Part shown: in pieces, positions 12,452-55,198 of the stretch
How positions within the stretch are numbered: position 1 is the stretch's first letter
How the letters are laid out: each line of letters starts with the position of its first letter
Origin: Hemiscyllium ocellatum
Taxonomy: Eukaryota
Direction: 5' to 3'
Length of the DNA stretch: 64,000 nt
NCBI RefSeq assembly: GCF_020745735.1
Contig: NC_083409.1
Location: 19,736,341 to 19,800,340, forward strand
Made by a program: the position numbers and the translations under genes
The notes under the pieces: generated by a model
Database searches by the model: none
What the model was told of the DNA's origin: nothing
What the model saw: the letters and a program-made list of their open reading frames with translations, nothing else

Positions 12452-12654
12452 ACACAGGCAGTGAGGAAGAATGTCCTGTGCCACCTTGCTCCCAGCCCCA
12501 CGGGGACAGTTTAGTTCCTGAGGAAGTTAGAATTTCAACTGCTCAGTCACTGGAATCACCATCAGCAGCCCTTCGGATGACCACCAGTCCTGACCATCCT
12601 ATTTTCACGGATGGTGTTTATTCCCAGGATTTTGTCGCAACACACAGTAAAATG
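12452..12654 (+). CDS. CEP350: CEP350-like exon 6 in window
   Basis: ttctgtag|AC ACA...AAA ATG|gtaaaa, 203 nt, phase 1 to 0. SEEECPVP...VPEE...SPDHPIFTDGVYSQDF resembles human SEEESPVP...IPEE...SPDHSILTEEMICSQEL. Confidence 0.82.
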
Positions 12655-12769
12655 GTAAAAGATGTTTTGCATTGTCCTTTTTACAAAAACTGTTTCTAAT
12701 GAGTAAAGAATGTCATATAAGGCTGCAGAGAATAGCAAATCCTTGGCTTTGCTCAAAATCAGTCCCAGG

Positions 12770-13040
12770 GAAACAGGAAGTGGAGAGAATGGGAAACAGT
12801 GTGAGAGAGGGGGGTGGGAGATCTGAGGGAATGGAAGTTCTGAGAATGAATGGAAAATATAAGTGTGGGGGGAATGGGAATTCTGAGTGGGGTTGGGAAA
12901 CATGGGAGTGGGATGAAATGGAAATTCTGAGAGGGAATTTGAAACGGGAGTGGCAGAGAATGGGAATTCTGAGGGGGAATGAGAAATGTAATGTGGGAAA
13001 GAATAGGAATTTTGTGAAGGCATGGGAAATATGTGCGGGC
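12770..13040 (+). repeat. Purine-rich degenerate tandem repeat (GGGAAT/GAATTCTGAG units)
   Basis: Reiterated gggaatgggaattctgag-like units. They generate spurious low-complexity ORFs. Confidence 0.75.
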
Positions 13041-33720: not shown

Positions 33721-34423
33721 ATCATGATCCAAATTTTAAATGGACCCTTACTCGTGATAATACAGTTTTCAATGTTTCTCTCCCCTTATGTGTTGTGAAG
33801 AGTTTGCAAACATGCTTTGATGAGGACAGTGCATCTTCAACACCGTATGATGGATTGGGCGGCTGCTTGAATTCTTACTTGTGATAATACAGTTTTAAAT
33901 GTGTCAGTGTTACTTTCCCCACTCTCTGGGGGAGTGCCGCTGTCACTATCCCCACCCTTCACTCTCGGGGTGATACCATTTTTAGCATCCTTTCTGTCTG
34001 AGAATGTTCCTATTCTTGTCCCCCACTCTCTCAGGGACAGGGTGGGTGTTTCACACGCACCTGGTTTGTTAGCTCCATTTACTCTCTTGTGAAATGGACG
34101 ATCCCTGTTTTACTCTGGTAACAGTGAGTTAAAGCCCAGTAGAGTTCACCCATCATCTCCATCATATCTCAGGGCCTAACGTTGGTCAGCACTCTCATGC
34201 TCCAGCACATCCCACCACTTCCCGCAATTTTCTCTCTTTCCAATCTTTACTGAACACCTTGTATCCAGGAATCCCCAAGGTCAAAAATCATACGACACCA
34301 GGTTATAGTCCAACAGGTTTATTATAAGACACAAGCCTCGCCCCTTCTTCAGGTGTTCAGAGGAGCAAGCAAGGTGAATTCAATCAACAGAGAAAACAAA
34401 CTCTGCTGTTCATTTCCTTCTCG

Positions 34424-34548
34424 GTTGACTCCGTTCTCCTCAATGACATGAACAAGAGACAAGGCAAGAATAAAGAATATAAGGACACTATCAGTGACCT
34501 TCTGAAATTCATAAGAAACCTCATCCAGCACTTTGATGAATAGAAAGA
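34424..34548 (+). pseudogene. RNase L-like (2-5A-dependent ribonuclease) KEN-domain exon relic
   Basis: Translates [41 protein letters not shown], matching recalled human RNASEL INECVMKKMNK...[23 protein letters not shown]. The polypyrimidine tract ends ttccttctcg| (AG lost), the donor |gtatgt is intact, and there is a TAG at 34541-34543. Confidence 0.8.
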
Positions 34549-34859
34549 GTATGTGAACAATAGTTGGTGGCAATATTTTCCTGCTTTTTCAACTTTTAGC
34601 ATTGATTCAAAGGCAGAATGAGCACCTTCCAAACCCAAGGCCATTTCCATTAGAAGGACAAGGGCAGCAGATACACTGAATACCACCACCTTCAAGTTTC
34701 ACTCAAATCTACATAGCATCCTGATATGAAAATATACTACTGTTCCTTCAGTGTCGCCGGGTCAAAATCCTGGACTACCCTCCCTTAGGGCATTGTGGGT
34801 TTATCTACAGCACATGGACTGCAGCGGTTCAAGAAGGTAGCTCACGACCACCTTGCAAA

Positions 34860-35185
34860 GGGCAGCATTGTGGGTCAGTGGTTAGTGCTGCTCCTTCGCA
34901 GCGCCAGGAACCTGGGTTCAATTCCACCCTGGGATGACTGTCTGTCTGGAGTTTGCACATTTTCCCCATGTCTGAGTGAATTTCCTCCACACACTACATA
35001 GATGTGTAGGTTTGGGGGATTAGCCATGCTGAATTGCACACAGTGTCCAGGGATGTGCAGGCAGGGTGGATTAGCCATGGGAAATGCAGCATTACAAGGA
35101 TGGGGCTGATCTAGACGGGTTGCTGTTTGGTGGGTTGGTGTGAACTGGATGGGCTGAATGGCCTGCTTCCACACCATATAATGAT
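34860..35185 (+). mobile_element. HE1/V-SINE-type SINE
   Basis: GGGCAGCATTGTGGGTCAGTGGTTAG...GGGTTCAATTCC head plus the shared core. Confidence 0.85.
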
Positions 35186-35329
35186 TCTATGATTCTCAAG
35201 GGCAACTAGGAATCTGGCCCAAACAGCAACACCCATGTCCTCCAAGTGAGTTTTAAACAAAAACATCATCTGCACTGCTTACTATTCCATCAGTCTTTGT
35301 GTCAATGTGGAACTATGATTCTCATTAAT

Positions 35330-38070
35330 ACATACAGTAAGTAGTTAAGGCCTCACCACAGAATCCTTGTGGAACACCACTCGTCACTTTCTTTCTCTGT
35401 TGTCTGTCACTAAACCAGCCTCTGAACCAAGTCAAACATTCATCTTCAATCCTATGGGTTTTAATATTGGTCAGCAGACTGTTTTGTGGTAAATGATCGA
35501 GTACTTCTGAAAGTTGATAAGCCTATACATTTCCTATTGTCAGCGAGTACAGACCCAGAGTCCCCGAGCACGCCTGATATGATAAGTCCTTCATCGCCTG
35601 GATCATTCTTGTAAACCCCTCCAATGCCAGTCCATGGTTTCTTAGAATATGGGTCCGAAATCTGCTCACAATATTCCAAATGCAGTCTGACCAGAGCCTT
35701 ACACTGCCTCAGCAGTACATCTCTGCTCTTGTATTCTGGCCCTATTGAAATGAATGCTATCATTTCATTTGCCTTCCCAAGCACAAACTGGACCTGCCCT
35801 GTTAACCTTCAGAGAACCCTGAATGAGGTTCGTGCTTTAGATTTCCAAAAGCTTTTCTCATTTAGCCAACAGTCTTTGCATCTCTTCTTCCCACCAAAGT
35901 GCACACCCTCACACTGTCACACATTGTATTCTGTCTGCCACTTCTTTGTCACTCTCCGAGCCTATCCAGGACCTTTTAGAGCCTTCCCACTTCCTCAACA
36001 CTACCTGTCCCTCCACCTATCTCATGTCATCTGCAAACTTAGCAACAATGTCTTCACTTTCTTCATCCAGATTGTTCATGTATAATGTGAATTTTAAGGT
36101 CCCAACATTGACCCCTACAGGACTCTACCAGTCACCAACGGCCATTTTTCCTCACTCTCTGCTTTATGCCAACCTGCCAGTCCTTAGTCCATGCCAGTGC
36201 CTCGGCCCTCACACTGTATGCTCTTATCTAATGTCAAAGGCCTTCTAGAAATCCAAATACATTACTTCCTTTGACTCTCCTTTGTGTGAATGGCTCATTG
36301 CGTTCTCAAAGAATTCTAACAGATTTGCCAGGCATGACCTCCCCTTGATGAAGCCGTGTTGACTCAGCCCTAGTTTACAATTGCACCTCCAAGTCCTCTA
36401 CAATTTCATCCTTAAATTGAAGTCTAAACCCTTACCAACAACTGAGTCCAGGCTAACTAGCCTATAATTTCCCATCTTCTCCCTCCCTCCCTCCCTTCCT
36501 TCTTAAACAGGGCTGTTATGTGAGCCACATTCCAGTCCCTTGCCCCCATCAAATCCCTCCCCACCACACTGTCATACCCTGACTCCATTGATTCCTGAAA
36601 GATCATCTCCAATACCTCCATAATTTACTCAGTGATCTCCTTCAGAACACACTCATGTAGTTCATCTAGTCTGGGTGATTTATCCACATTCAACCTTTCA
36701 GCTTTGATTCAATTCCTCTGCTATTTCTTCACTTCCTCTAATACTTTCTCCAGCCTCATTTTCCGGCGATCCAATGTCTATTTTTGTCTTCCTCTTCCTT
36801 TTTATACATCTGATAAAACTCGTGCAATCTTCTTTTGTATTACTGGCTAACTTACCCCCACATTTCCCCCTCTCCAGCTTTAATGCTTTTTTATTTATCC
36901 TCTCCAGGTTTTTAAAGGCTTCCTAACCGTCTGGCTTCCCACTTTTCTCTATCACATTGTGTGTTTTTTTCTTTTGCTTTTATGCTGTCCGTGACTTCCC
37001 TCACCAGCCATGGTTGCCTTGTCCTCCCCTGCGTATGTTTCTTCTTTTTTGGGATGAATTCCTGCTCTGCTTCCTGAATTGCCCCCATAAACTCTGCTGT
37101 TTGCTGCCCCACCATCTTACCTGCTCGGCTCCCCTTCCAATCAGCTCTGGCCAGCTCCTTCCTCATGCCTTTGTCGTTACCTTTACTCAACTGAAATACT
37201 CATCCATCTGATTGCAGCTTCTCCCTCTCAAACTGCAGGGGGAATTCTATCATATTATGGTCACTTATCCAGAGGGATACTTTAACCTTCAGCTCATTAA
37301 TCAAGTTTGCCTCTTTCCACATAACTGAATCCAGAACTGCCTGTTCCATAATGGCTCAAACACAAGCTGCTCCAAAAACCATCTCGTAGACATCCATGAA
37401 ATCTTTTTCTTGAGACGCGCTACCCAGTCCACCTATCGATTGAGGTCTGCCCTGACATTTTGTATACGGCTTTTCTGTCTCCTGACTGATTTCCTTCCCC
37501 ACACCCTGATTACTGCTTGGAGACCTGGACATAACTTGCATCAGATTTTTTATTTCTGGCGGTTCCTCAACTCTACCCACCCAGATTCTGCACCATTTGA
37601 CTCTATATCACTTCTTGCTTTGATTTAATTTAATTTCGTACTAACAAGGCAACTCTTGCCCCTTTACCCATCTACCTCTCCCTTTCATAGGACATGTATT
37701 CTTGGATATTTAGTTCCCAGCCCAGATTCCCTTACAGCCATGTCTCTGTGATACCCACGACATCGTTCCTGCCAGTTTCAATCTGCACTACCAGCTCATT
37801 GCATATACTGTGTGCTTTTATGTACAACACCTTCAGCCCTGCATTGACTGCCTTCCTTCTCATCATTATCCTCTTATCTGCTGTGCTTGATGCTCGACTC
37901 TTGTTCCTTTCTGTACTCTCTGTTGTAGTATGTCTTATAGAAACTTGAATAACCTCTCTTGAGCCCTCCTCCACTTTAACTAGTTTAAATTCCTTGGAAA
38001 CTCAATTTACCTCGATTTATGGCATCACTTTGTCTACCTTACTTGGAATGCTTTGTGCATTTAGATACAA
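35330..38070 (-). mobile_element. Old CR1 with AP-endonuclease start and internal deletions
   Basis: Minus strand: LKVLYIKAHSICNELVVQIETGRNDVVGITETWL (endonuclease N-terminus), tether KGMRKELARADW, then RT C-terminal motifs towards 35.4 kb. Confidence 0.85.
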
Positions 38071-38459
38071 ACCCTTTACATTTGTTCTATCATTGATTTT
38101 CCTTGCACTTTTATGGTTCCTTTAATATTCAAAAAATCTATCCCTTCCTTTTATTTTCTGGTAACAATCAATCCCATCCGTAACCGGCAATCCTACCTTC
38201 TCCTTTACCTTCCATTTTCTCATTTTCCATCCAACTGAACCAAATTCCTTTCTCTTTGGGTTGAGTTCAGGACAATATTTATCTTGGACCAACATCGTGA
38301 AGAATGCTCTTTGACCTCATTGCTTCTAGTGGGATCTTGTTGTGTAGAAACTGGCTCCCCCTTTCCTGACATTGCAACAGTGACTTGTTTTAAAACAAGA
38401 TGTAAATGTCTTTGGGAGAGCCTGAGGTGTTAGGGGCTCGATTGAAATACAATTACATT

Positions 38460-41110
38460 TATGGAGATGTACAGCACGAAACTGACCCTTCAGTCCAACT
38501 CATCCATCCTGACCAGATACCCTAAATTAATCTAGTCCCATTTGCCAGCATGAGGCCCATGTCACTCTCAACCCTTCCTATACATATACCCATCCAGATG
38601 GCTTTTTAAATATTGTAATCATACCAGCCTCCACCACTCCCTCTGGCAGCTCATTCCAAAAATGCACCACCCTCTGCATGAAAACACTACACCTTAGGTC
38701 CCTTTTAAATCTTTCTTCTGTCACTTTCAATCTATGCCCTCTAGTTCTGGACTCCCCAACTCTGAAGAAAAGATCTACTCTATTCACCGTATCTATTCCC
38801 CTCAAGATTTTATAAACCACTGTGTGGTCACCCCTCAGCCTCCAACAATCCGGGGAAAATAGTCTCAGTCTATTCAGCTTCCTCCGATAGCTCAAACTCT
38901 ACAACTTTGGCAACACCCTTATAAAACTTTTCTGAAGCATTTTAAGGTTCACAATATTTTTCCTACAGCAGGGAAACCAGAATTACACACCATATTCCAA
39001 AAGTGACCTAACCAATGTCTGACACAACCACAACAGCTCCCAACTCCAATACTCAATGCACTGCCCAATAAAGGAAACCATTCCAAGTTACTTCGTCACT
39101 CCCCTACCTACCTGCAACTTCACTTTCAAGGAACTTTTTTTTGGTTGAAATGGGAGTCTTACAGTTGTGAAAGGTGCCATTCCATGGCACTGTTGGATGA
39201 AGAGCAGGCAGTTCCGTCTGGTGTCCTGGTCAATATTTATCCCCCAATAAAAATCACTAAAAATCTATTTCTCTGCTAATTATCATACTGTATTTGGGAT
39301 CTCACTGTGCAAAGTCTGCTGGAAAGAGCCATTGGGACATCCTGAGTTGGGGACAGGTGCTACACAAATGCAGGTCTTTCTTTAAGGTTAGAGTCTCCTG
39401 ATCCTGAACCTCTCCCATTGTCTGCGCACTCTCACCTTCCAGGAGGCATGTGGTCATTAGGAGCAGTGACCCTGCCTGACCCCGGGACACTGAGACTCTT
39501 TGCAGCTTCACCCTTGATCTCAGCCCAGTGGTGTGCAGCAAGGTTTGAAATGTATTCTGGAACATTCTACACAGACACCCCAATGTGACTCCTTCCTGAA
39601 ATGTTTGGATCCAAGTCTGCTGCAATGTTCTCGGATAAAGTTCTCCTCATCTGTGGGTAATCGGAGGTTTGTTGAAAAGGGATCGAGCTCCATCCCACTT
39701 TCCAGCTCTTGCTCCATAGCTCTGGAGGTTTCGCTGTTCTAAGTGAATATCCAGGTGTTTTATCAATGTGATGAGGGTTTCTGCCTCTCCCACCCTTTCA
39801 GACAGTGAGTCCCAGATCCCATCAGCCTCTGGGTGAAAACAATTACTCCTCAATTCCCCCCGAACCCTGTTCCCAATTCATTTCAATCTCTCCCCATGGT
39901 TATTGCCCTCTCTGCTGATGGAAATCAGTCTTTCCTACCAATTCTATCTCGGCCCTCATCATTTTACACGCCTGATCAAATCTCCCCTCAACCTTCTCTG
40001 TTCCAAAGAAAACAGTCCCAGCCAAACCAATCATTCCTCAAAGCTAAAACTCCCCATTCCTGACAAAATCCTCCACTGTCCCCATCACTAGGGGAATCAT
40101 ATCCTTCCTGTAATGTGGTGACCAGAACAGTACACTGTTCTCTCACTGCGCCCTAACTGGGGTTTTATACAGTTCCAGAATAAACAAATTTCTTGCTTAC
40201 ACTCTCAACCAAAAATGAGGTAAGGGAGGTGATGGTCTAATAGTATTATTGCTGAACTGTTAATCCAGAGATCCAGATAATATTCTGGAGACCCGGGTTC
40301 GAATCCTGCCATAGCAGATGGTGGAATTTGAATTCAATTAAAAAAATCTGGAATTAAGAATCTAATGATGACCATGAAACCATCGTTGATTGTCAGGAAA
40401 AAGCCATCTGATTTCCTAATGCCCTTTAGGGAAGGAAACTGTCATCTTTACCATGTGACACCAGACCCCCAGCAATGTGGTTGACTCTAAAATGCCCTCT
40501 GGAGATTAGGGATGGGCAATAAATGCTGCCGATCCAGCAATGCCCTCATTCCATCAAGGGAAAAAGTAAAACAGTTTATCCCATGTGTCTTCTGAACCAC
40601 CTCACTGACCTGCATTCATTAATCACCATGGCCACATCTTCCACCTCCACACACATCTGACTTCCAGCCTCAAGCTGACGAGAGATATTCCTTCATTATC
40701 TGAGAAATGGACAGAAATATTAAACACAGGAGCAGCAGTAGGCCATTCGGCCCCTCATGCCTGCTCCACCATTCAATATGATCATGGCCGATCATGCAAC
40801 ACTGTCCCCTGTTCCTGCTTGCTCCCCACATTCTTTGAACTCATTAATCTTAAGAACTGTATCTAATTCCTTCTTGAACACATACGGCATCTAATTCCCT
40901 CATGCTGGTAAATTGATGAGAAGTATTGAGTTGTTTTTTGACACAATGATCCGTTGGGCCTTTTGGGTCGCTCGGACTCTGACTCTATTATTATATATTA
41001 TGAATAACTGGGTACCAAGGACTGATCCCTGTGGTACCCCAACTGGGAAATATCTGCCATTCAGAAAAAGACTCATTCTTCCTGTCCTGTCTGCCAACCA
41101 GTTCTCAATC
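38460..41110 (-). mobile_element. Cluster of CR1 3' fragments (about 38460-39130, 39720-40170, 40710-41110)
   Basis: LRLFSPDCWRLRGD..VYKILRG and PVGVPQGSVLGTQLFIIY motifs, plus CR1 3' UTRs. Confidence 0.78.
40224..40560 (+). mobile_element. tRNA-derived SINE of a second family (possibly MetaSINE-type; family name from memory)
   Basis: B box GGTTCGAATCC at 40296-40306, core ctaatgccctttagggaaggaaa, and 3' tail gggatgggcaataaatgctg shared with the L2-like LINE. A partial copy lies at about 50450-50690. Confidence 0.7.
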
Positions 41111-41867
41111 CATGTCAGTACCTGACCCCCAATCCTCTGGATTTCTTTGATTTAGTTGGACATAGTTAATCCTGTCTTTGCCTTCCTCAGGTCCTGTTCA
41201 ATGTCACCCCTGCATTTCCAATCCTCCTCTGGGCTTTCTGCAGATAACTCCAGATAACCAACATCACCTTCCCTGTTTGGTCTTCCCTACTCTGGCTGCC
41301 TTTTGACATCCCAGGCTGAGAGTCTAGATTAGGGAGTCCCACCCTTACTCATTGTGGGAACAGATTCTGAACAATCTCTGTCTTTTCTTTTGAGGGATCC
41401 CACTGCCCTGACATTGATTTCACATCATGGCGTTGGTTCCAGTCCACTTTTACTCAATTATCGCACAGTTTAGTAAAATAATTCATTCCCAAATGAAAAC
41501 GTTAACACTTGCTGCATGGTTCTCCATTTCCATCCCTACTCTCAATCTCACTGAGTTCTGATCACTGTCACTAAACTGGTCCCCCATTGAGAGCCCTTGC
41601 AGCTGCCCACATTCATTTCTTAAACAAGAGTCCAAAACTGTTCCTTGTCTTTCCCCATCACCTTCTCGGGGCAATTAGGGATGAGAAATAAATGCTGGCC
41701 CTGCTCGTGACACTCACTCCCAAGAAACAATTTAAACAATACCAGTTTTTTTTTGTCGGGTTTGGTAGGTATTGGATACAAATGTTCAAACATTTTACCA
41801 GTGAATGTTCTGAGAGTTGAAGTTCCTTTAAATGGCAGGGATTAAAACTGTTTCTTTTGTCTTTCAG

Positions 41868-42196
41868 GCCGTGAGAACTCTCAGCCCAAGCTGACCCTGC
41901 TGTCCTCCTCCCCGGAGCAGGTCAATGCCAAGGGCACTGCCACCCTGGTGTGCCTTGCCAATCACTTCTATCCCGATGAGCTGGAGGTGCAGTGGAAGAA
42001 GGACGGTGCAGTCATTTCGGACGGGGTTCAGACCAGCAACTACCTGCGAGCTTCGGACAGCACCAACAGTGTCAGCAGCCTGCTGACCCTCTCTGGGTCT
42101 GACTGGGAGTCCAATGCTCACTTCTCCTGTGCCTTCACCCACGTGACCCTCCCCTCTCCCCTCAGCAAGAGCATCAGGAGATCAGAATGTGTATAG
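41868..42196 (+). CDS. IGKC: Ig light-chain constant exon, shark kappa (type III/NS4-like), open reading frame
   Basis: Acceptor ttttgtctttcag|GC CGT GAG, phase 1. RENSQPKLTLLSSSPEQVNAKGTATLVCLANHFYPDELEVQWKKDG...SDWESNAHFSCAFTHVTLPSPLSKSIRRSECV*. C1-set Cys/Trp/Cys and the penultimate inter-chain Cys are present; close to recalled nurse shark NS4 C. Confidence 0.93.
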
Positions 42197-43640: not shown

Positions 43641-44329
43641 CGTCTCTGAGGTATTTGTCTCTTGAGTGATGGATAGAGAATGGGCTTTGTGATGGGAATT
43701 GAAGATTTGGCTTTAATCGTCTCAAATCATGAATGAAAAACAGTTCAGTCTGAAATGGCACTTCAGTGAGATGGCCAAAGTTAAAAATCACACAACACCA
43801 GGTTATAGTCCAACAGGTTTCTTTGGAAGTACACGCTATCAGAGCTCCTTCATCAGGCAGCTAGGATCATAGTTGACAGAATTTCCAGTGAAGTTGATAT
43901 GGCAACTGAGAAAGGTGAATATTGAGAGTGTGTTCTCAGTAAGGGAGGGATTTCAGAGGCAGTGGGCACTGTGCTCCTTAATGTGTTGCCTGATTACAAG
44001 GGGATTTTTTGGATCCAGGGTCATTGCAGTTGTGTCTGCCTGCCCAGCCAGTGCTGACTACCCATAGTCATATTTCAATGGTCAGTTAGCTCTAAACTAG
44101 GTGCAGTAATATTACATTACAGAGAGGGGAGCTGTCTGAACGAGGGTGGTTGAATTCTTACAGCCCCAAGGGGGGTTGCAGTGGATTAATGAAGGGCTCT
44201 ACCAACATGAAGGTGCCACCTTCTCTCCCCCTGCCTCAGCTGTGGTGACCCTTGGATTAAACTCACCACCATTTGGCTCTGTCTGTAATGAGTGAGTGGG
44301 ACTACGCTCCTCTGGGATTAGATTAGATT

Positions 44330-45330
44330 AGATTACCTACAGTGTGGAAACAGGCCTTTCGGCCCAAACAATCCACACCGACCCTCCAAACAGTAACCCG
44401 ACCCATTTCCCTCTGACTAATGCACCTAACACTATGGGCAATTTAGCATGGCCAATTCACCTGATTTGCACATCTTTGGACTGTGGGAGGAAACCAGGGC
44501 ACCCGGAGGAAACCCAGGCAGACACAGGGAGAATGTGGAAACTCCACACAGACATTCACCCGAGGCTGGAATCGAACCTGGGAACCTGGCGCTGTGAGGC
44601 AGCAGTGCTAGCAGGGATGATGACCACGTTGCTGGGTGATGGAGGGAAGGTCAACCTCGCCCAAAGGCAGCACAAGCTGGATTGAAGGGGTATCAAGAGT
44701 AAGCATGAGGAGATTGAGGGTAACAGAAGGAGGGGGTTGGTTGGCAGGTTGTTATTCAGAGTCAGGTCCCAGAGTATCAGTCCTTCTGTCAGCCAAGGCT
44801 CCCTGATTGGACAAGGTTAAACCCCATCAGGGAACTCATATTTTATCAGAAAGAAAATAAACACTTATCGAACAAGGAGCGCAAGAGCTAAAGGACACTG
44901 AACAATATGAATGGTTTGAAAGATTCCTTTACAAACATCGCAAATGAGATTTGGGAAAGTAACTCTTTCACTCAGAGGGTGGTGGGAATCTGGAATGGAC
45001 TGTCATAGAATCCCTACAGTGTGGAAACAGGCCATTTGGTGCAACAAGTCCCGACCAATCCTCCGAAGAGAAATTCACCCGGGATCCACTCCCCTTGGCT
45101 ATTTCCCCTGACTAACACACCTAACTAACACATCCCTGAACACTATGGGCAATTTTAGAATGGCCAGTTCACCTAACCTGCACATCTTTGGATTGTGGGA
45201 GGAAACTGGAGCATACAGAGGAAAAACACACAGACACGGGGAGACTGTGCAACCTCCACACAGATACCCGGGGCTGGAATCGACCTGGGTCCCTAGTGCT
45301 GTGGGGCAGCAGTACTAACCACTGAGCCAC
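44330..45330 (-). mobile_element. Two HE1/V-SINE-type SINEs (about 44330-44610 and 45005-45330)
   Basis: Reverse complements of the SINE consensus seen at 45462; (TAATC)n-type tail at 44320-44335. Confidence 0.85.
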
Positions 45331-45461
45331 CATGCCACCCATAAAAAAGCCCAAAGAGTTGAGATTTCATTCAGCTCCAAGAGTCTGATGTGACACAAAC
45401 TATAAACTCTCAACCCTCTGTCAGGGAAGGTAGTGGAGGGTAGAGACTTTACAACCTTAGT

Positions 45462-45776
45462 GGGCGGCACGGTGGCACAGTGGTTAGCACTGCTGTCTCA
45501 CAGCGCCTGAGACCCGGGTTCAATTCCCGATTCAGGAGACTGACTGTGTGGAGTTTGCACATTCTCCCCGTGTCTGTGTGGGTTTCCTCCGGGTGCTCCG
45601 GTTTCCTCCCACAGTCCAAAGATGTGCTGGTCAGGTGAATTGGCCATGTTAAATTGCCCGTAGTGTTAGGTAGGGGTAAATGTAGGGGTATGGGTGGGTT
45701 GCGCTTCGGTGGGTCGGTGTGGACTTGTTGGGCCGAAGGGCCTGTTTCCACACTGTAAGTAATCTAATCTAATCTA
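45462..45776 (+). mobile_element. Young full-length HE1/V-SINE-type SINE
   Basis: A box TGGCACAGTGG, B box GGTTCAATTCC (45517-45527), and tail (TAATC)3-A9. Nearly identical over its 3' 200 bp to the copy at 18258-18460. Confidence 0.92.
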
Positions 45777-46539
45777 AAAAAAACCCCTTGAATATCATAA
45801 CATTCATGGATTTGGGACAACGGCAGGAAATTGGGATGAAAGTGCCTTCAGTTGTAATTATGTTCGTGCAGACTCAATGGGCCAAAATGCCTTTTCTATG
45901 CTGTATCTATGCTGAGAGGGCTGTGCAGGTTAATGGTGACTACTATCGAAGGTGTCGAAGGTGGCAAATACATGATCAAGGGTCAGAGGAAATGGTTCAA
46001 GCTTCAGTGAAGGCCCAAGTAGGAGCTTGGAAGGAGGGTCAAGACTAATGGAGGCAAGGCCAATGGAGACTAAGCGAGGGCACAGAGTGCTGGCTAGCAT
46101 CTCCAGGGGTTGTCGTGAGAAATATGGGGACAAGAGGGGAGTGTGTAGGGAGCGAGTACAGTTTCAGATGAAATGCGACCTGTGCCAGCAGCAGCATGAC
46201 TTTCAGCACCAGCGGGTGTCCCTGACTGTGTCAGGCTCACTGACTGCTCTCTGTGTGATTCCACACAGCCACTCGTCTGGTCAACACGCAAAGTCTAGCA
46301 CATGTTTATACTACTGGCTGCAGCACAGTCTGCACCCAGCATCTGCATCTTCTGTAGATGCCACTGTCTATACACACCGTCTGCACGCTCCGTTTACACC
46401 CCGTGTCCAAACCCACTGTCTACACCGCTGTCTGCACCCTCCATCCACACCTCCCATCTTTATGCTGTTGTCAGATTGTATCCAATGATTCCATTGAGCT
46501 TACTGCAACAGAAGCCTGAATTTTAGAACTGGCAATGAT

Positions 46540-48280
46540 TGTCCTCTCACCCTGACCTTCAAAGTCTGTCTTCCATAATGAGGTGATTAATATTAATTAC
46601 TGAATGCCATTTGATTTCTGTGATGGCAGGACTGATGTATAAAGAGAGGTTGAGTTGGTGAGGATTGTATTCATTGGAGTTTAGAAGAATGAAGGAAGGG
46701 AATCTTGTACAAAGGTATAAAATTGGAACAGGACGAGACACGTTAGATGGAGGAAGGATGTTCCAAATGGTGGGGAAGTCCAGAACCAGGCTCATAGTTT
46801 AAGGTTAAGGGGTAAACCCTATAGGATAGAGATGAGGAAAAATGTTTTTACCCAGAGAGTGGTGAGCCTGTGGAATTCGCTGTCACAGAAAGTTGTTGAG
46901 GCCAAAACATTCTGTTTTCAAGAAGGGGGTAGAGATAGCTCTTGTGGCTAAAGAATCAAGGGATATGGGGTAGGGAGGGATTACATTGTAGTGCTCGATG
47001 ATCAGCCATGACCATAGATAGATTCTTGATGACTGAAGGGATGAAACATTATCAGAGAATGTAGAGTTGAGGTTAAAATCAGATCAACCATAAGGGCCGA
47101 GTGGCCTACTTTTGTTCCTTGCCCATATGTTGCCTCATACACTTTCACACAATCGAAGACTGTCATTTGTATATTCTACCTGCAGATTAAACACCTTGTG
47201 CAATAGGCCTCATCTGTACAGTGTTTTCTACAGCCTTTCACCATGATATGTTTAAGATAATGGTCCCATAATCAATCCATTAACTTTGTAAGTTAGTTTA
47301 GTTAAAGCAATAAAACACATTACAATCATGAAGCAGACATTACAGCAAGCAAGAATGGACTGCACTGAGGCTCAGTTGTCAGCACTGCTGTCCCACAGCG
47401 CCAGGGACACAGGTTCGATTCCGGCCTCGGGCAACTGTCTGTTTGGAGTTTGCACATTCTCCCCGTGTGTCTCTGTGGGTTTCCTCTGGATGCTCCGGTT
47501 TCTTCCCACAGTCGAAAGATGTGCAGGTTCGGTGAATTGGTCCATGGTGTTCAGGGGTGTGTGGATTAGGTGCAGTAGTCAGGGAATATGTAGAGTAATG
47601 GGGTGGGGGAGTGGGATGGATGCTCTTTGGAGGGTCAGTGTGGAGGCCTATTTCCACACTGTAGGGATTCAGCGAATTGATCTTGGTCTGTGCAGCTTGC
47701 AGGCTGACAGATGACTAACTGGTGGGTAGAGTTCAACACTGTACATATACAGGGGTGGATTTTCTTAAAGGTAATGTGTGCACACAGCACACAGTTACTG
47801 AATATCAAGGCAAGATAGTTACATTCTCTCTTGTTGGAGACAGTCATTGCCTGGCAGCTGTGTGGCACAAATGTAACCTTATTCACGTTCCAAACCCACA
47901 TCTCTATCAGTAAAATGCTTTGGAACATCCTCTGGTGACAAAATGTGCAATACATTTGGGGTGGCACGATGGCTCAGTGGTTGGCACTGCTGCCTCACAG
48001 CGTCAGGGACCCGCCTCAGGCAGGTCTGTGCGGAGTTTGCACGTTCTCCCTATGTCTGCGTGGGCTTCCCCCGGGTGCTCTGGTTTCCTCCCACAGTCCA
48101 AAAGATCTGCAGGCTGGTAAACTGGCCATGCTAAATTGCCTATAGTGTCCAGAGATGAGCAGGCTAGGTGGATTAGCCATTGGAAAATACAGGGATAGCA
48201 TCGGGGTCTGGATGGAATGTTCTTTGGAGGGGTGGTGTGGACTCGATAGGCTGAATGGCCTACTTCCATACTATAGGGAT
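46540..48280 (+). mobile_element. CR1 3' fragment (about 46540-47120) and two SINEs (about 47365-47670 and 47958-48280)
   Basis: CR1 ...FTQRVVSLWNSL... motif; SINE heads and cores as above. Confidence 0.8.
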
Positions 48281-48829
48281 TCTGTGATACAAATGTAAGT
48301 TCCTTCTTTCCATTCTAGCCCTGAAGCAAGTGGTTCTGTCTCATATCCACTCAAGAGATGTCAACCCTTTGAAAACAGGAGCAGTCTCTATTCTTTTGGA
48401 AAGTACTTCTTCCACTCTGTGTCCTTCATAGCCTTGTAGACAGCAACAATGAGATCGGGAAATAACCCAAAACTATAATCTTCTGGACTCTTCATTAAAC
48501 TGTGGAACCTGAAAAGTACAATTAATGTCCAAGTCAATGAAGATATTTCTCAGCAATCCCTAAATGCTGAGTTTTAGTACTCAGCAGGCCCCAGGAGTCA
48601 AAATAACCAAGTAGATCATTGCTCTGAATTGCTCATAAATGTCACCTTCACATTTCTGGAGGCTTTGATGAAAAAGATTGCTTACTCCTCTCCAATATAC
48701 AGCTTAAAATCAGCTCCAACTCCCAACCATCCAGCTGAGAGCAGAGCCCTGTACAAACTGGAACCTGGTCAGTGGGAGCACTGTCACCTCTGTCTCAGAA
48801 GCTTTGTCTATTTAAACCAGTGTCTTAGT

Positions 48830-51800
48830 CAGAGAGTCATTCAGCACGGCAACAGACCCTTCGGTTCAACTCATCCATGCCAACCAGACATCCTAATCTA
48901 GTTCCATTTGCCATGATTTAGCCCATATCCCTCTAAACCCTTCCTATTCATGGAGCCATATAAATGATGCAATTGTACCAGCTTCCACCACTTCCCCTGG
49001 CAGCTCATTCCGTGCATGCACCATCCTCTGCATGAAAAGTTGCCCCTTAGTTCCCTTACAAATTCTTCCTCTATTACCTTAAACCTATATCCTCTAGTTT
49101 TGGACTGATATACCCTGGGAAAAAGACCTTGGATATTCACCTTATCGATGCCCCTCATGATTTTATAAACCTCCATAAGTTCACCCCTCAACCTCCAACG
49201 CTCCAGGAAAGTAGCCCCAATCGATTCAGCCTCTCCCTGTAGCTCAAACCCTCCAATCCCGACAACATCCTTGCAAATCTTTTGTTTGCCCCCTTTCAAG
49301 TTTAAAAACATTGTTCCTAGAGCAAGAAGACCAGAACTGAGCCCTGTATTCTCAAGGTGTCCTCACCAATGGCCACTTTGGTGGACAGCCAGAACATGAC
49401 ATCCCAACTCCTATACTCAATGTACAGACCAATCAAGGTGAGTGTACCCTGTTTACCCATGGCTTCACTTTCAAGGAACTGTGAGTCTGCACTCCAAGGT
49501 CTCTTTGCTCAGCAACACTCTCCAGGAATCTGCCCTGATTTGCCTTCCCAAAAAGCAATGCCTCACACTTATCTAAATTAAACTCCATCTCCCACTCCTT
49601 GTCCATTGGCCCATCTGAACACACATTGATCATACATTACAAACTGGAACATATGGAAGGCATTGGTGAGACACAACAGCAGTATTGTGTCCAATTGTGT
49701 TCTGCTTATTAGATTAGATTACTTACAGTATGGAAACAGGCCCCTCGACCCAACAAGTACACACTGACCCTCCCAAGAGCAACCCACCCAAACCCAATTC
49801 CTTCCACCTAACACCATTTGAGGAAGGATGTGGTGGGACTGGAGGCTGTTCAGAGGATTTTCCCCAGACTGATTCCAGGGATGAAAGGGTTGTCTTATGA
49901 GGAGCAGTTAAATAGATTGGGCTTGTACTCACCGGAGTTCAAAAGAACGAGGAAGGATCTGATTGAGGGATAGAAAATGTGAAAGGGGATTGATAGGGTG
50001 GATATTGAATAGATGCTCCCCCTTGCGGGACAATCTGGAACAAGAGGTCATCGATATAGAGTGAGAGGAGGTAGGTTCAAAACTGGGATGAGGTGAAACT
50101 ATTCTCCCAGAGGGTTGTGAATCTGTGAAACTCAATGCCTCAGAGTGCAGTGGAGGCAGAATCAATCAACAGGTTCAAGAAAGATATGTTTCTGATTAAA
50201 CGTGAGATAAAGAACAAAGGCAACAGGCAGGAGAGTGGAGTTGAGACCAGGATAAGATCAGCCACAGTCATGTTTAATGGCGGAGCGGGCTCAAAGGGCT
50301 GAATTGCCTCCTCCCGTTCCTAATTCCTATGTTGAGCACACAGTCAAGGCTGACACTGCAAAACTGAGGGAGCTGTTGTCTTTCAGGTGAGATACAAAAC
50401 AGAGGTCCTGCCACAATCTATCGAACTGTACTATCTCCCCCAGTGACAAATGCTGGAATTTGAATTCAAATCACAAAGCAAGTCTCATTCATGGGGACCA
50501 CGATAATGATCCCTGAATGCTGTCCAGCCTCAGCCTTACCCAGTCTGGACTTCATGTGACTCCAGCCCCACAGCAATCTGGTTAACTCTTAGGTGCCTTC
50601 TGAGAGGCCACAGCAAGGGCATCAGTTCAAGGGCAATTAGTCTTGGGTCACAAATGCTGATCTATGCCAGTGACACCCACCTCCCAGAAAACAGAATGCA
50701 ACAGAGATTGGTGTCAGCCAAAATTGTCAGATCAGACTCCCAATGAGATGGGGAGATGGTTAAAGATGTGTATTCAGCTCAGTATGGAACAGGTCCCCAC
50801 TTGTTAGCACATCGTCGCTGATAAAATAAGTGAGAGAAAACGGAAAACTAAAGGTGAGAACACTCAAATGTGGGAATATCAGTGAGAATTCAGGCAACTG
50901 AAGGAAGATATGAAGAACTGCAAAGGAAGACAAAAAGGAAGCACGAGTTACAAAGCAAGTGATGGAGAAAGAGACCTGCAAGGGGTCACAAGAATAACAC
51001 AAGTGCTTTACACGAAAATTAGAAAATCATGGGGGCTCCAGTGCAATGTGAGCCCATTAAAAACAAACTGGGAATTCCATGAATGAGACTAAGGGAATGA
51101 CCGATGTGAACAATAATTAGTTGTGTCAGTCTTCACGGTCAAGGAACAGGATAATGCAGCTTTCATTCCAGGGAGGTTAGTAATGAATGGAAGATTGGAA
51201 TTCACGAAACTTGATACTTGCCATGAAACAGCATTGGAGAGTGAGCAGCTCTAAAGGCTGACAGATCTCCAGGACCTCAGAGGTTTAAAGGAAGAGGGGA
51301 AAGAAGTTTCAGAGGCTTTTCCCATCAGATTCCGAAGCAGCAACGATTCCTTTAGTTTGGAAAATGTCTTGCTGTAACCCCACAGATTGAAGAAAGATGA
51401 GTGAGGGAACCAAGGAAATTATATCCTGGTCAATCTAACATCTCTTTAGGGGCTTCATAGGAATCTATAATTAACAGCCGAGAGAATGAGCATGTAGAGA
51501 ATTGGAAATAGCCCACATAGATTTGTGATGGGTAGGTTTTAACTAACAAACCGAATGCATTAAATAAAATAGGCTTATAGGATGAGGAGGGATCTTATTG
51601 AAATTTACTGAATACTGATAGGCCTGGAAAGAGTGAATGTGAAAAAGATGTTTCCAAAAACAGGAGAGACTCGGTAACTAAGGCACAGCCTCAGAATGAA
51701 GGGCCAACCCTTTCGAGCTGAGATGAGGAGGAATTTCTTCAGCCAGAGGGTGGTGAATCTGTGGAACTCATTGATACAGAGGACAGTGGAGGCCAAGCCA

Positions 51801-51960
51801 CTGAGTGTATTTAAGACAGAGATAGATAGGTTCGTGAGAGTTAAGGGGATCGAACGTTCCTGTGGAGTTGGCAGGAGAATGGGGTTGAGAAGCATATCTG
51901 CCAAGATCAAATGGCAGAGCAGATTCAATGGGCTGAATGGCTGATTTCTGCTCCTATTTC
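48830..51960. mobile_element. CR1 3' fragments in both orientations, with SINE pieces
   Basis: ERWRLRGELMEVYKIMRG (minus), RAEMRRNFFSQRVVNLWNSL (plus), and a SINE tail at about 49715-49820. Confidence 0.75.
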
Positions 51961-52119
51961 TTAAGGTCTTCTGGACAGTTTCCCCAAAACCCTGGAACAC
52001 TGAACCCACTGGACTGTGAGCCCTGCTGGAGCTGTTTTTCATCAGAACTTTGCCAAGAGATGACCAAAGGGTGAAGAGAGTGTGCATTTAGGTGGGAACT
52101 TAAGAATGCTTCCTAGCTC

Positions 52120-54140
52120 CTGGAATACCATGAGTGCAGGAAGTGTGGTCAGTGACAGCAGTTGGAACTCCGGGTTCCGGAGGTTGACCAGTAGCTGGCG
52201 TCAGTGCGGAGCGTCCGTGAGGCTGAGAGCTCTGTGGAGAGCATGTATCTAGATGTGGTCACTCTGCAGCTTCAGCGAATGCAGGGTGAGAGGGAATGGG
52301 GGAGCAGCAGACAGTCCAAAAGGGCCAGGCAGCTAGTAGAGGAATCCCCTGAGTGCATCGCACTCTCCAACCAGGATTCAGTTCAGAATCCTGATGAGAA
52401 TGATGGTTCATCTGGGGAGTGCAGCCAGAGCCAAGCCCATGGCACCAAGGTGGAGGGTTCAGCTGTACAGGGGGTACAAGGAAGAGGGAGAGCGAGAGGA
52501 GATTCGAGAGTGAGGGCAATCGATAGGTGTTTCTGCAGTTGCAGATGGGAATCCAGGATGGTGTGTTGTCTCCCTGGTGCCAGGGTCAAGGATGTCTCTG
52601 AGCGGCTGCAGAGCACCCTGAGGGGAGAGGGGGAACAGGCAGCAGTCGTGGTCCACATCGGTCCCAGTGACAGAGGGAGGAAAGGGATGTGGTCCTGCAG
52701 TCAGAATTTAGGGGGCTCTGGAGGGAATTAGCACTGGGATCTCAAAAGTTGGAATCTCCGGATTTCTCCCAGTTCCCCATCCAAGTGAGAATAGGAACAG
52801 GAGGATAACACAGGTGAATGTGAAGCTGGAAAGAGGATCCAAGTTGGAGGACTTTAGATTCTTGGGACATTGAGACTGGGTCTGGGGGAGATGGGACCTG
52901 GACAGACCAGACAGCGTTGTTCCTGAACCGAGCTGGGACTGAGTTCCTTTGGGGTGATTTACTAGTGCTGTTGGCGAGGGTTTAAACTAACTTGGCAGGG
53001 CTGTGGGAGCCAGGAGGGAATAACAGAGAGGAACACCAGGGACCACAGAATCCTCAGAACAGTCAACAAGTCACCACCCAATGGGAAGGATGCAGAGGAA
53101 TACAAATGCAAGGAATTTACAGATACATGGAAACGTGTTAGAGTCATTATAAATGGCTCTTTAATTTTTGAATATAGACTGGGGTAGTAGCAGTGTAACA
53201 GGCAGGGAGGGGCCAGAGTTGTGAGAGACTGTTCAGGTGAATTTTCAGGTGGCATTGTGGCCAGTGAAGAAGGCTGTTTAAGAGTACAATGGGATATTGA
53301 CCAACTGGGCCAGTGGGCTGAGGAATGGCAGATGGAGTTTAATTCAGATAAATGTGAGTGCTGTACTTTTCAAAGCCAAACCAAGGCAGGACTTTTATGG
53401 TTAATGGTAGGGCCCTGCGGAGTGTTGCTGAACAAAGAGACCGAGGGGTGAAGGTGCAGGTGCATTATTCCTTGACAGTGGAGTCACAGGTAGACAGGGA
53501 GATGAAGAAGGTGTTGGGTATGCTTACTTTTATTGGTCACTGCATTGAGTAAAGGAGTTGGGACATGATGTTGCAACGGTACAGCAGCTGGTGAGGCAAC
53601 TTTGGGAATAATGTGAACAATTCTGATCATCCTGAGATAGGAAGGATGTTGTTAAACTTAAAAGGCAGCGGAAAAGATTTACAAGGATGTGGCCAGGAAT
53701 TGGAGGGTTTCAGCTGTCGGGAGAGACTGAAGAAATGGGCCTATTTTCCCTGCAGCATCTAAGGCCTCGGGGTGACCTTATGGATGTGCAGAAAATTATG
53801 AAGGGCATGGACAGGGTGTATATCCAAGGTCTTTTCCTTGGTAAGGGGAGTCCAAAACAAGATAGCATAGGTTTAAGGTGAGAGGCAAAAGATTCAAAAG
53901 GGACCTGAGCGGTAACTTGTCACTCAGTGGGTGGTGCGTATCTGGATCGAGCTGCCAGAGAAAGCGTTGGAGGCGGATAAAATTACAACATTTAAAACAC
54001 ATTGGGATGGGAACATGGATAGGAAGGGTTTAGAGGGATGTAAGCCAAATGCTGGTTAATGGGATGAGGTCATTTAGGATATCTGGTTAACTCAGGCAAG
54101 TTGGACTGAAATGTCTGTTTCCACACTGTATGACTCCATG
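52120..54140 (+). mobile_element. CR1 retaining ORF1 (SGNH esterase-like) joined to the RT C-terminus; endonuclease and most of RT deleted
   Basis: RMVCCLPGARVKDVSERLQSTLRGEGEQAAVVVHIGPSD (CR1 ORF1 esterase, GTND-like motif), then DIDQLGQWAEEWQMEFN from about 53290. Confidence 0.85.
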
Positions 54141-54807
54141 ACTATGAGGGGCTGGAAAAGCTGAGACTTTTTTCCCTCAAGTGTAAGAGTCTGAGGAGTG
54201 ACCTTATAGAGGTTTATAAAATCATGAGGGACATATATCATGTAAATCATTCAGGATGCAGGTGAAATTTTGTAGAAATGGCAAAAATATTCCCAAAGAT
54301 CATTCCAGGGATGAGGAACATCAGTTATTAAGATAGTTCGGAGAATTTGGGAATGACTTCTTTGGAGAAGGCTGAGAGGAGATTTGTTGGAGGAATTAAA
54401 ATCAGGAGGGGCCTGGATACAGTAAAAAGGAAGAAAATGTTTCCAATTGACAAAGAATTGAGACCGAGAGACCACAGATTGAAGTCAATTGGGAAAACTC
54501 ACAAAAGTGAGATGGGGAACAACATTTTGGCCAGTGAGTGGTTAAGGTGTGGAATGCACTGCCTGAGAGTGTGGTGGAGGCAGCTTCAATTAAAACATTC
54601 CGAAGGAAATGAGACTGATATTTGAAAAGCAACAATGTTCAGGGTGACAGGGAGAAGGCTGGAGAATGACACTCAGTGAATTGCTCATTCGGAGAACCAG
54701 TACAGACAGGATGGGCAGAATGGCCTCCTTGTGCACTGTAACAATTCTGTGATTATGTGATTGAGCAGAATTAAAGCTGGGGGAGGTGGGAGCTCGGTGT
54801 CTCACTG

Positions 54808-54839
<32 letters not shown>
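54808..54839. repeat. (TGC)10 trinucleotide repeat
   Basis: An uninterrupted run read directly from the sequence. Confidence 0.95.
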
Positions 54840-55198
54840 AGTTAATGAGATCAGAGACTGGGACAGGGAGCCAGAGCTCACATCAAACTCTGCCCGTGTC
54901 CGTCACACTGAGACTGGCAGGAGGCTACTCACTGATTTCACTCCATGCTGCAGGAATGGGACCACAGGCTGCAAATGGACAGAGCTCCTCCACACGGTGA
55001 GTAAAACTTACTGACTTATACCTTGCTGTTTAATGGGGTTATAGGACTAAAGAAATACAGGTGTACACCATATGGGACACGGTGTTCCTCAATCAAACAT
55101 TTCCTTTACTGCAACACTTTAACAATTCAGTATTTGTGTTTTATAAATTGTGTTTAGAGATTGAAAGGGTTAATAATAGAGGATTGAGGTTTACTTCC

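Follow-up and report, generated by a model that had tools for sequence, protein, structure and literature searches.

The 125-nt unit that we analysed in the genome of Hemiscyllium ocellatum is genuinely a copy of the second-to-last coding exon (exon N-1) of shark RNase L, but a dead one. In the reading that we favour, with a probability of roughly 0.8, it is the non-functional exon of an unprocessed, truncated two-exon RNase L duplicate that adjoins an immunoglobulin (Ig) kappa cluster and that one inferred inversion has split. Only this two-exon tail of the gene is present in the window, by which we mean the whole 64-kb stretch of DNA analysed (contig NC_083409.1, positions 19,736,341 to 19,800,340), and nothing in it is able to make a ribonuclease, since the 2-5A-binding ankyrin domain, the dimerising pseudokinase and the first third of the KEN domain are all missing. 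The features on which this reading is built are collected in Table 1.

Table 1 RNase L and Ig kappa features in the window (window positions; for features on the minus strand, individual elements are given in reading direction)
Feature	Position	Strand	Evidence and remarks
RNase L homology island: end of preceding intron, exon N-1, 74 nt of last intron	34186-34622	+	blastn against the functional C. punctatum locus (L001)
Dead penultimate RNase L exon (N-1): middle third of KEN domain, FIRN..H motif	34424-34548	+	Pfam, tblastn, DNA alignment
Ig kappa constant (C) exon, open	41868-42196	+	Pfam C1-set, E 7.8e-20; acceptor and reading frame read
Block collinear with 3' end of RNase L locus: 613 nt of last intron, last exon, downstream flank	43960-49122	-	blastn
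Last RNase L exon (N), intact	48509-48388	-	tblastn, E 6e-19, 95% identity to C. punctatum RNase L
J-like segment	55233-55196	-	J scan; F-C-K-G where FGxG is expected
RSS23	55272-55234	-	RSS scan
RSS12	55696-55669	-	RSS scan
Kappa V	55972-55697	-	Sequence read; TAG at 55859-55857 in FR2; short FR3
Kappa leader (L)	56207-56159	-	Sequence read

A dead penultimate exon of RNase L

The Ribonuc_2-5A profile search proposed in an earlier note on this DNA gave a match of exon N-1 to PF06479 (E 1e-5, profile positions 44-78 of 127) at 26.1 bits, above the curated Pfam cut-off of 23.3 bits, and tblastn against the window aligned the exon with RNase L of Chiloscyllium punctatum at 93% protein identity (E 1e-18). 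Taken together, these two results place the match far beyond chance. The 12-residue ..FIRNL..H.. motif, in which the same note had recognised the catalytic-region signature of RNase L with its histidine, was found to be identical in all of the shark RNase L proteins fetched. Its arginine and histidine have established roles in human RNase L; in the copy, the motif is a likeness at the level of sequence and implies no activity.

The state of the exon became apparent from DNA alignment with the functional C. punctatum gene (locus L001, an old-assembly contig in which N gaps, left unfilled, cover most of the last intron). Copy and functional gene share the same exon borders, that is 125 nt with a phase 0 start and two extra bases at the end, and the phase comparison with an intact shark RNase L that had been suggested thus came out the same. 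The donor GTATGT, starting at 34549, is kept as it stands in the functional gene, whereas the acceptor is destroyed, with ...TTCTAG in the functional gene replaced by ...TTCTCG in the copy (A to C at 34422, leaving CG at 34422-34423). Within the exon itself, four of the 125 nt differ (96.8% DNA identity): beyond the lost acceptor, a lysine codon AAG has become TAG at 34541, one change replaces T with I, and two are silent. Translation therefore runs for 39 amino acids (34424-34540, plus strand) before it meets the TAG at 34541-34543. Every element of the exon shape that had been read from the letters (125 nt, phase 0 to 2, gtatgt donor, lost acceptor AG, late TAG) is accordingly seen against the functional gene. 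The description of the unit as a decayed duplicate also holds, given the two disabling lesions and intron flanks homologous to those of the functional gene. It was reported as absent from the open reading frame track; at a minimum of 20 amino acids, however, the mechanical list does contain a 31-aa frame at 34448-34543, the only form in which the stretch appears there.

Extent and parentage of the RNase L material

A second piece of RNase L, the last coding exon (exon N), lies about 14 kb away on the opposite strand. It has an intact acceptor (TTTTCAG at 48516-48510, minus strand), opens with the one base that completes the GA left over by exon N-1, and ends in a TAG stop (48390-48388) that coincides in position with the stop of the functional gene and proteins. 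Of its 122 nt, 5 are changed relative to the functional C. punctatum exon, and on its own it is too short for a Pfam match. When 11 RNase L proteins were compared with the 64-kb window by tblastn at E values up to 0.5, no other RNase L exons (ankyrin, kinase or first third of KEN) were detected. Exon N-1 begins at residue 793 of C. punctatum RNase L, whose KEN domain occupies residues 751-872; of this domain, the two window exons together supply no more than about two thirds. No candidate came from a search with residues 793-873 of P0019, the RNase L tail.

Exhaustive searching of 1.84 billion representatives, done without a profile, brought up a full-length RNase L from the shark Mustelus asterias (P0002), and a word-based search with the KEN region of this protein returned the RNase L proteins of ten further species. 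Among the resulting 11 tblastn queries, C. punctatum RNase L (XP_072429488, P0019) was much the closest to the two window exons, at 93% and 95%, compared with 65-84% for other sharks and with 40-84% when rays are included. We also compared the RNase L tails of C. punctatum, Chiloscyllium plagiosum and H. ocellatum, and a mere three changes (T to I, K to stop, V to M) set the two window exons apart from the C. plagiosum protein. Because the C. punctatum protein is the closest and the C. plagiosum tail differs so little, the parent, as judged from sequence comparison, is a hemiscylliid RNase L gene.

The assignment to RNase L, and not to IRE1 or a transposon, was likewise upheld by the profile match and the 93% identity, and pig and human RNase L were the only credible relatives among solved structures. 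IRE1 (ERN1) shares with the window exons the Pfam family PF06479 and a general LL..RN..H motif; unlike IRE1, however, these exons are 93-95% identical to shark RNase L, and an IRE1 origin was rejected on that ground and because no IRE1 chain appeared among solved structures even at E values up to 10. A transposon origin of exon N-1 was ruled out by the RNase L matches obtained in the solved-structure search and by tblastn.

Homology to the functional locus

The sequence around exon N-1 that is homologous to the functional locus forms an island of 437 nt with transposon sequence on both flanks. Its larger part (window 34276-34622) aligns with L001 37241-37597 by blastn at 90.5% identity, or 93.6% counting substitutions only, and its first part (34186-34275) matches L001 36692-36780, with a 460-nt indel between the two matches. 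The intron stretch concerned, L001 36781-37240, is present in the functional gene and absent at window 34275/34276, which may reflect an insertion there or a deletion here. No homology to L001 was found by blastn beyond the island to the left or right, and exon N-2 and the first 980 nt of the preceding intron were unmatched; the boundary of the copy thus falls inside that intron, at window 34186.

The block around exon N is longer. Three segments of it (window 45785-49122, 44785-45458 and 43960-44791) match L001 42275-50766 on the minus strand, at 88.9-90.9% counting substitutions only; to the left the match stops where L001 itself ends, and to the right at an N gap in L001. Identity rises to 94-95% over some 450 nt around the last exon (48381-48830, minus strand), taking in about 320 nt of intron, compared with 82-91% in the rest of the block. 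Such a tract could be due to gene conversion involving the functional gene, or the rate of change may simply vary locally. On substitution counts, the divergences of island (93.6%) and block (88.9-90.9%) would be compatible with one age for both.

A stretch of the parent intron, L001 37598-37925, had no counterpart anywhere in the window by blastn. Two further blastn matches were set aside, namely L001 38298-38448 with window 40224-40375 and L001 36456-36623 with window 53046-53207; both look like dispersed repeats, with 74-75% identity as against 89-94% for true homology.

The surrounding Ig kappa cluster

A window-wide scan found exactly one kappa C exon, one V, one exon N-1 and one exon N, arranged as exon N-1 (+), C (+), exon N (-) and J-V-L (-). 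The kappa C exon is therefore inverted relative to L-V-J, and it converges tail-to-tail with exon N, with 6.2 kb between the end of C (42196, plus strand) and the RNase L stop (48388, minus strand). The C exon is open while its V and J partners are dead, and both recombination signal sequences (12 and 23) still look canonical.

Three side observations concern this region. When the kappa C exon was used as a protein query, all of the matches were short entries carrying bacterial labels. Two of these, P0021 and P0022, share 78-82% identity with it and come from contigs of 507 and 990 nt that are assigned to Aeromonas veronii and Salmonella enterica; host or sample DNA has probably contaminated the bacterial assemblies in these cases. 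Between the island and the kappa C exon, at 36000-40000, the sequence is CT-rich and of low complexity with a strong excess of C over G (GC skew down to -0.39). Finally, a putative piece of a CEP350-like gene lies at 12452-14670; CEP350 and RNASEL are both located on human 1q25, and the piece hints at a region duplicated from an old CEP350 / RNASEL / Ig light-chain neighbourhood.

Origin of the arrangement

The present order can be derived from a simple one. If the middle pair is flipped, the window reads exon N-1 and exon N on the plus strand facing C, J, V and L on the minus strand, that is, an RNase L tail convergent with a kappa unit. A single inversion would thus have flipped a block that contains kappa C and exon N; one breakpoint would fall within the last RNase L intron, somewhere from 34622 to 41868, and the other within the kappa J-C intron, somewhere from 49613 to 55196. 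In one step the inversion would have parted exon N-1 from exon N as well as C from J-V-L, so that both the split of the RNase L tail and the inverted position of C are explained. The part of the parent intron that would be informative on the breakpoints is an N gap in L001, and searches for inverted repeats, by self-comparison and for split transposons found neither inverted repeats flanking the candidate breakpoints nor a transposon split across them. As the breakpoints are not placed, we hold the single inversion to be probable, less firmly than the duplicate origin as a whole. The parent-intron stretch that lacks a counterpart means that at least one deletion would be needed besides. A scaffolding error is unlikely because the window contains no N; it also has no long inverted repeats that would invite misassembly.

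The same layout might have arisen with no inversion at all, from two unrelated fragments, in which case the island (+) and the block of C plus exon N (-) would come from different copies whose remainder was lost by deletion or transposon insertion. The small size of the island (437 nt), the transposon sequence on either side of it and the failure to find a breakpoint signature speak for such an origin. It would, however, require four independent losses (exon N and C from one copy, exon N-1 and L-V-J from the other) in place of one inversion event, and it sits poorly with the finding that every part is represented by a single copy in the canonical order, that the exon phases fit, and that the two pieces diverge from the parent to a similar degree. 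We therefore regard two unrelated fragments as rather unlikely, if worth keeping in mind. Considerably less likely is a whole-gene RNASEL paralogue that decayed in place and lost its upstream exons: both terminal exons are present, and the CEP350-like piece lies upstream in the window, in line with the shared location of CEP350 and RNASEL in human, but the 64 kb hold no trace of the 565-codon ankyrin/kinase exon or of any other exon, and the match to the parent breaks off sharply within the preceding intron.

That exon N-1 might be live, or an alternative exon of an expressed RNase L-like or KEN-domain gene, is barely credible. Its donor is intact, as are the acceptor and stop of the last exon, and RNA-like runs hold about 0.10 of the island's sampled words; this share, however, equals that of a 65-nt stretch identical to the functional mRNA and says nothing about the window copy, which has lost its acceptor, carries an in-frame TAG, has no upstream exons and finds its partner exon on the other strand.

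Returning to the truncated duplicate split by an inversion, the RNase L tail is consistent with a piece that travelled together with an antibody light-chain cluster, because it comprises the last two exons only, its homology starts within an intron and its partner exon is tail-to-tail with kappa C. For the same reasons, the gene duplication and turnover of RNase L that the earlier note had drawn from the relic found no support. Full-length RNase L with ANK, kinase and KEN domains is annotated in C. punctatum, C. plagiosum and H. ocellatum, and no turnover of the gene is therefore indicated. It is a rather far-fetched extension that the stretch between kappa C and the RNase L 3' end might hold an item required by the cluster, such as a 3' enhancer or boundary element, which would make duplication units reach into RNase L, with frequent flipped blocks then reflecting recurrent germline Ig rearrangement.

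Relation to known genes and pseudogenes

With the hemiscylliid RNase L gene (XP_072429488), the window copy shares the borders and phases of exons N-1 and N, 93-95% protein identity and about 89-94% DNA identity in intron and 3' flank. It differs from that gene in having only two coding exons, placed on opposite strands, with a lost acceptor and a premature TAG, and in having no ANK, pseudokinase or first third of KEN. Its homologous intron flanks, a boundary within an intron and disabling lesions are the features of an unprocessed partial duplicate. Pseudogenes of this kind in segmentally duplicated immune loci are similarly truncated, keep their introns and carry disabling point lesions, here within an amplified and rearranged Ig region; in contrast to them, the window copy is additionally split by an apparent inversion. 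No publication dealing with fragments of RNase L in the light-chain loci of sharks came up in a literature search.

The exon N-1 copy is ordinary duplication debris, not a working gene, and for annotation this means that KEN-domain matches in the H. ocellatum kappa region are not to be scored as RNase L genes, nor taken to show expansion or loss of the family. The useful by-product is that one inversion would cover both the RNase L exon and the kappa C exon inverted relative to L-V-J; otherwise the relic matters little.

RNase L itself is known in cartilaginous fishes, where the enzyme of Callorhinchus milii is functional with its OAS partner, and it has undergone recent lineage losses within jawed vertebrates (PMC10400998). 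An earlier paper recorded RNase L in the elephant shark survey and noted that teleosts are without it (PMC1845163). A side observation from our searches concerns the latter group, reported to be without RNase L: a hypothetical protein of 449 aa from the teleost Larimichthys crocea (TMS01848.1, P0001) contains three tandem KEN-like units (..LLRFIRNL.EHY..) and no kinase or ankyrin part.
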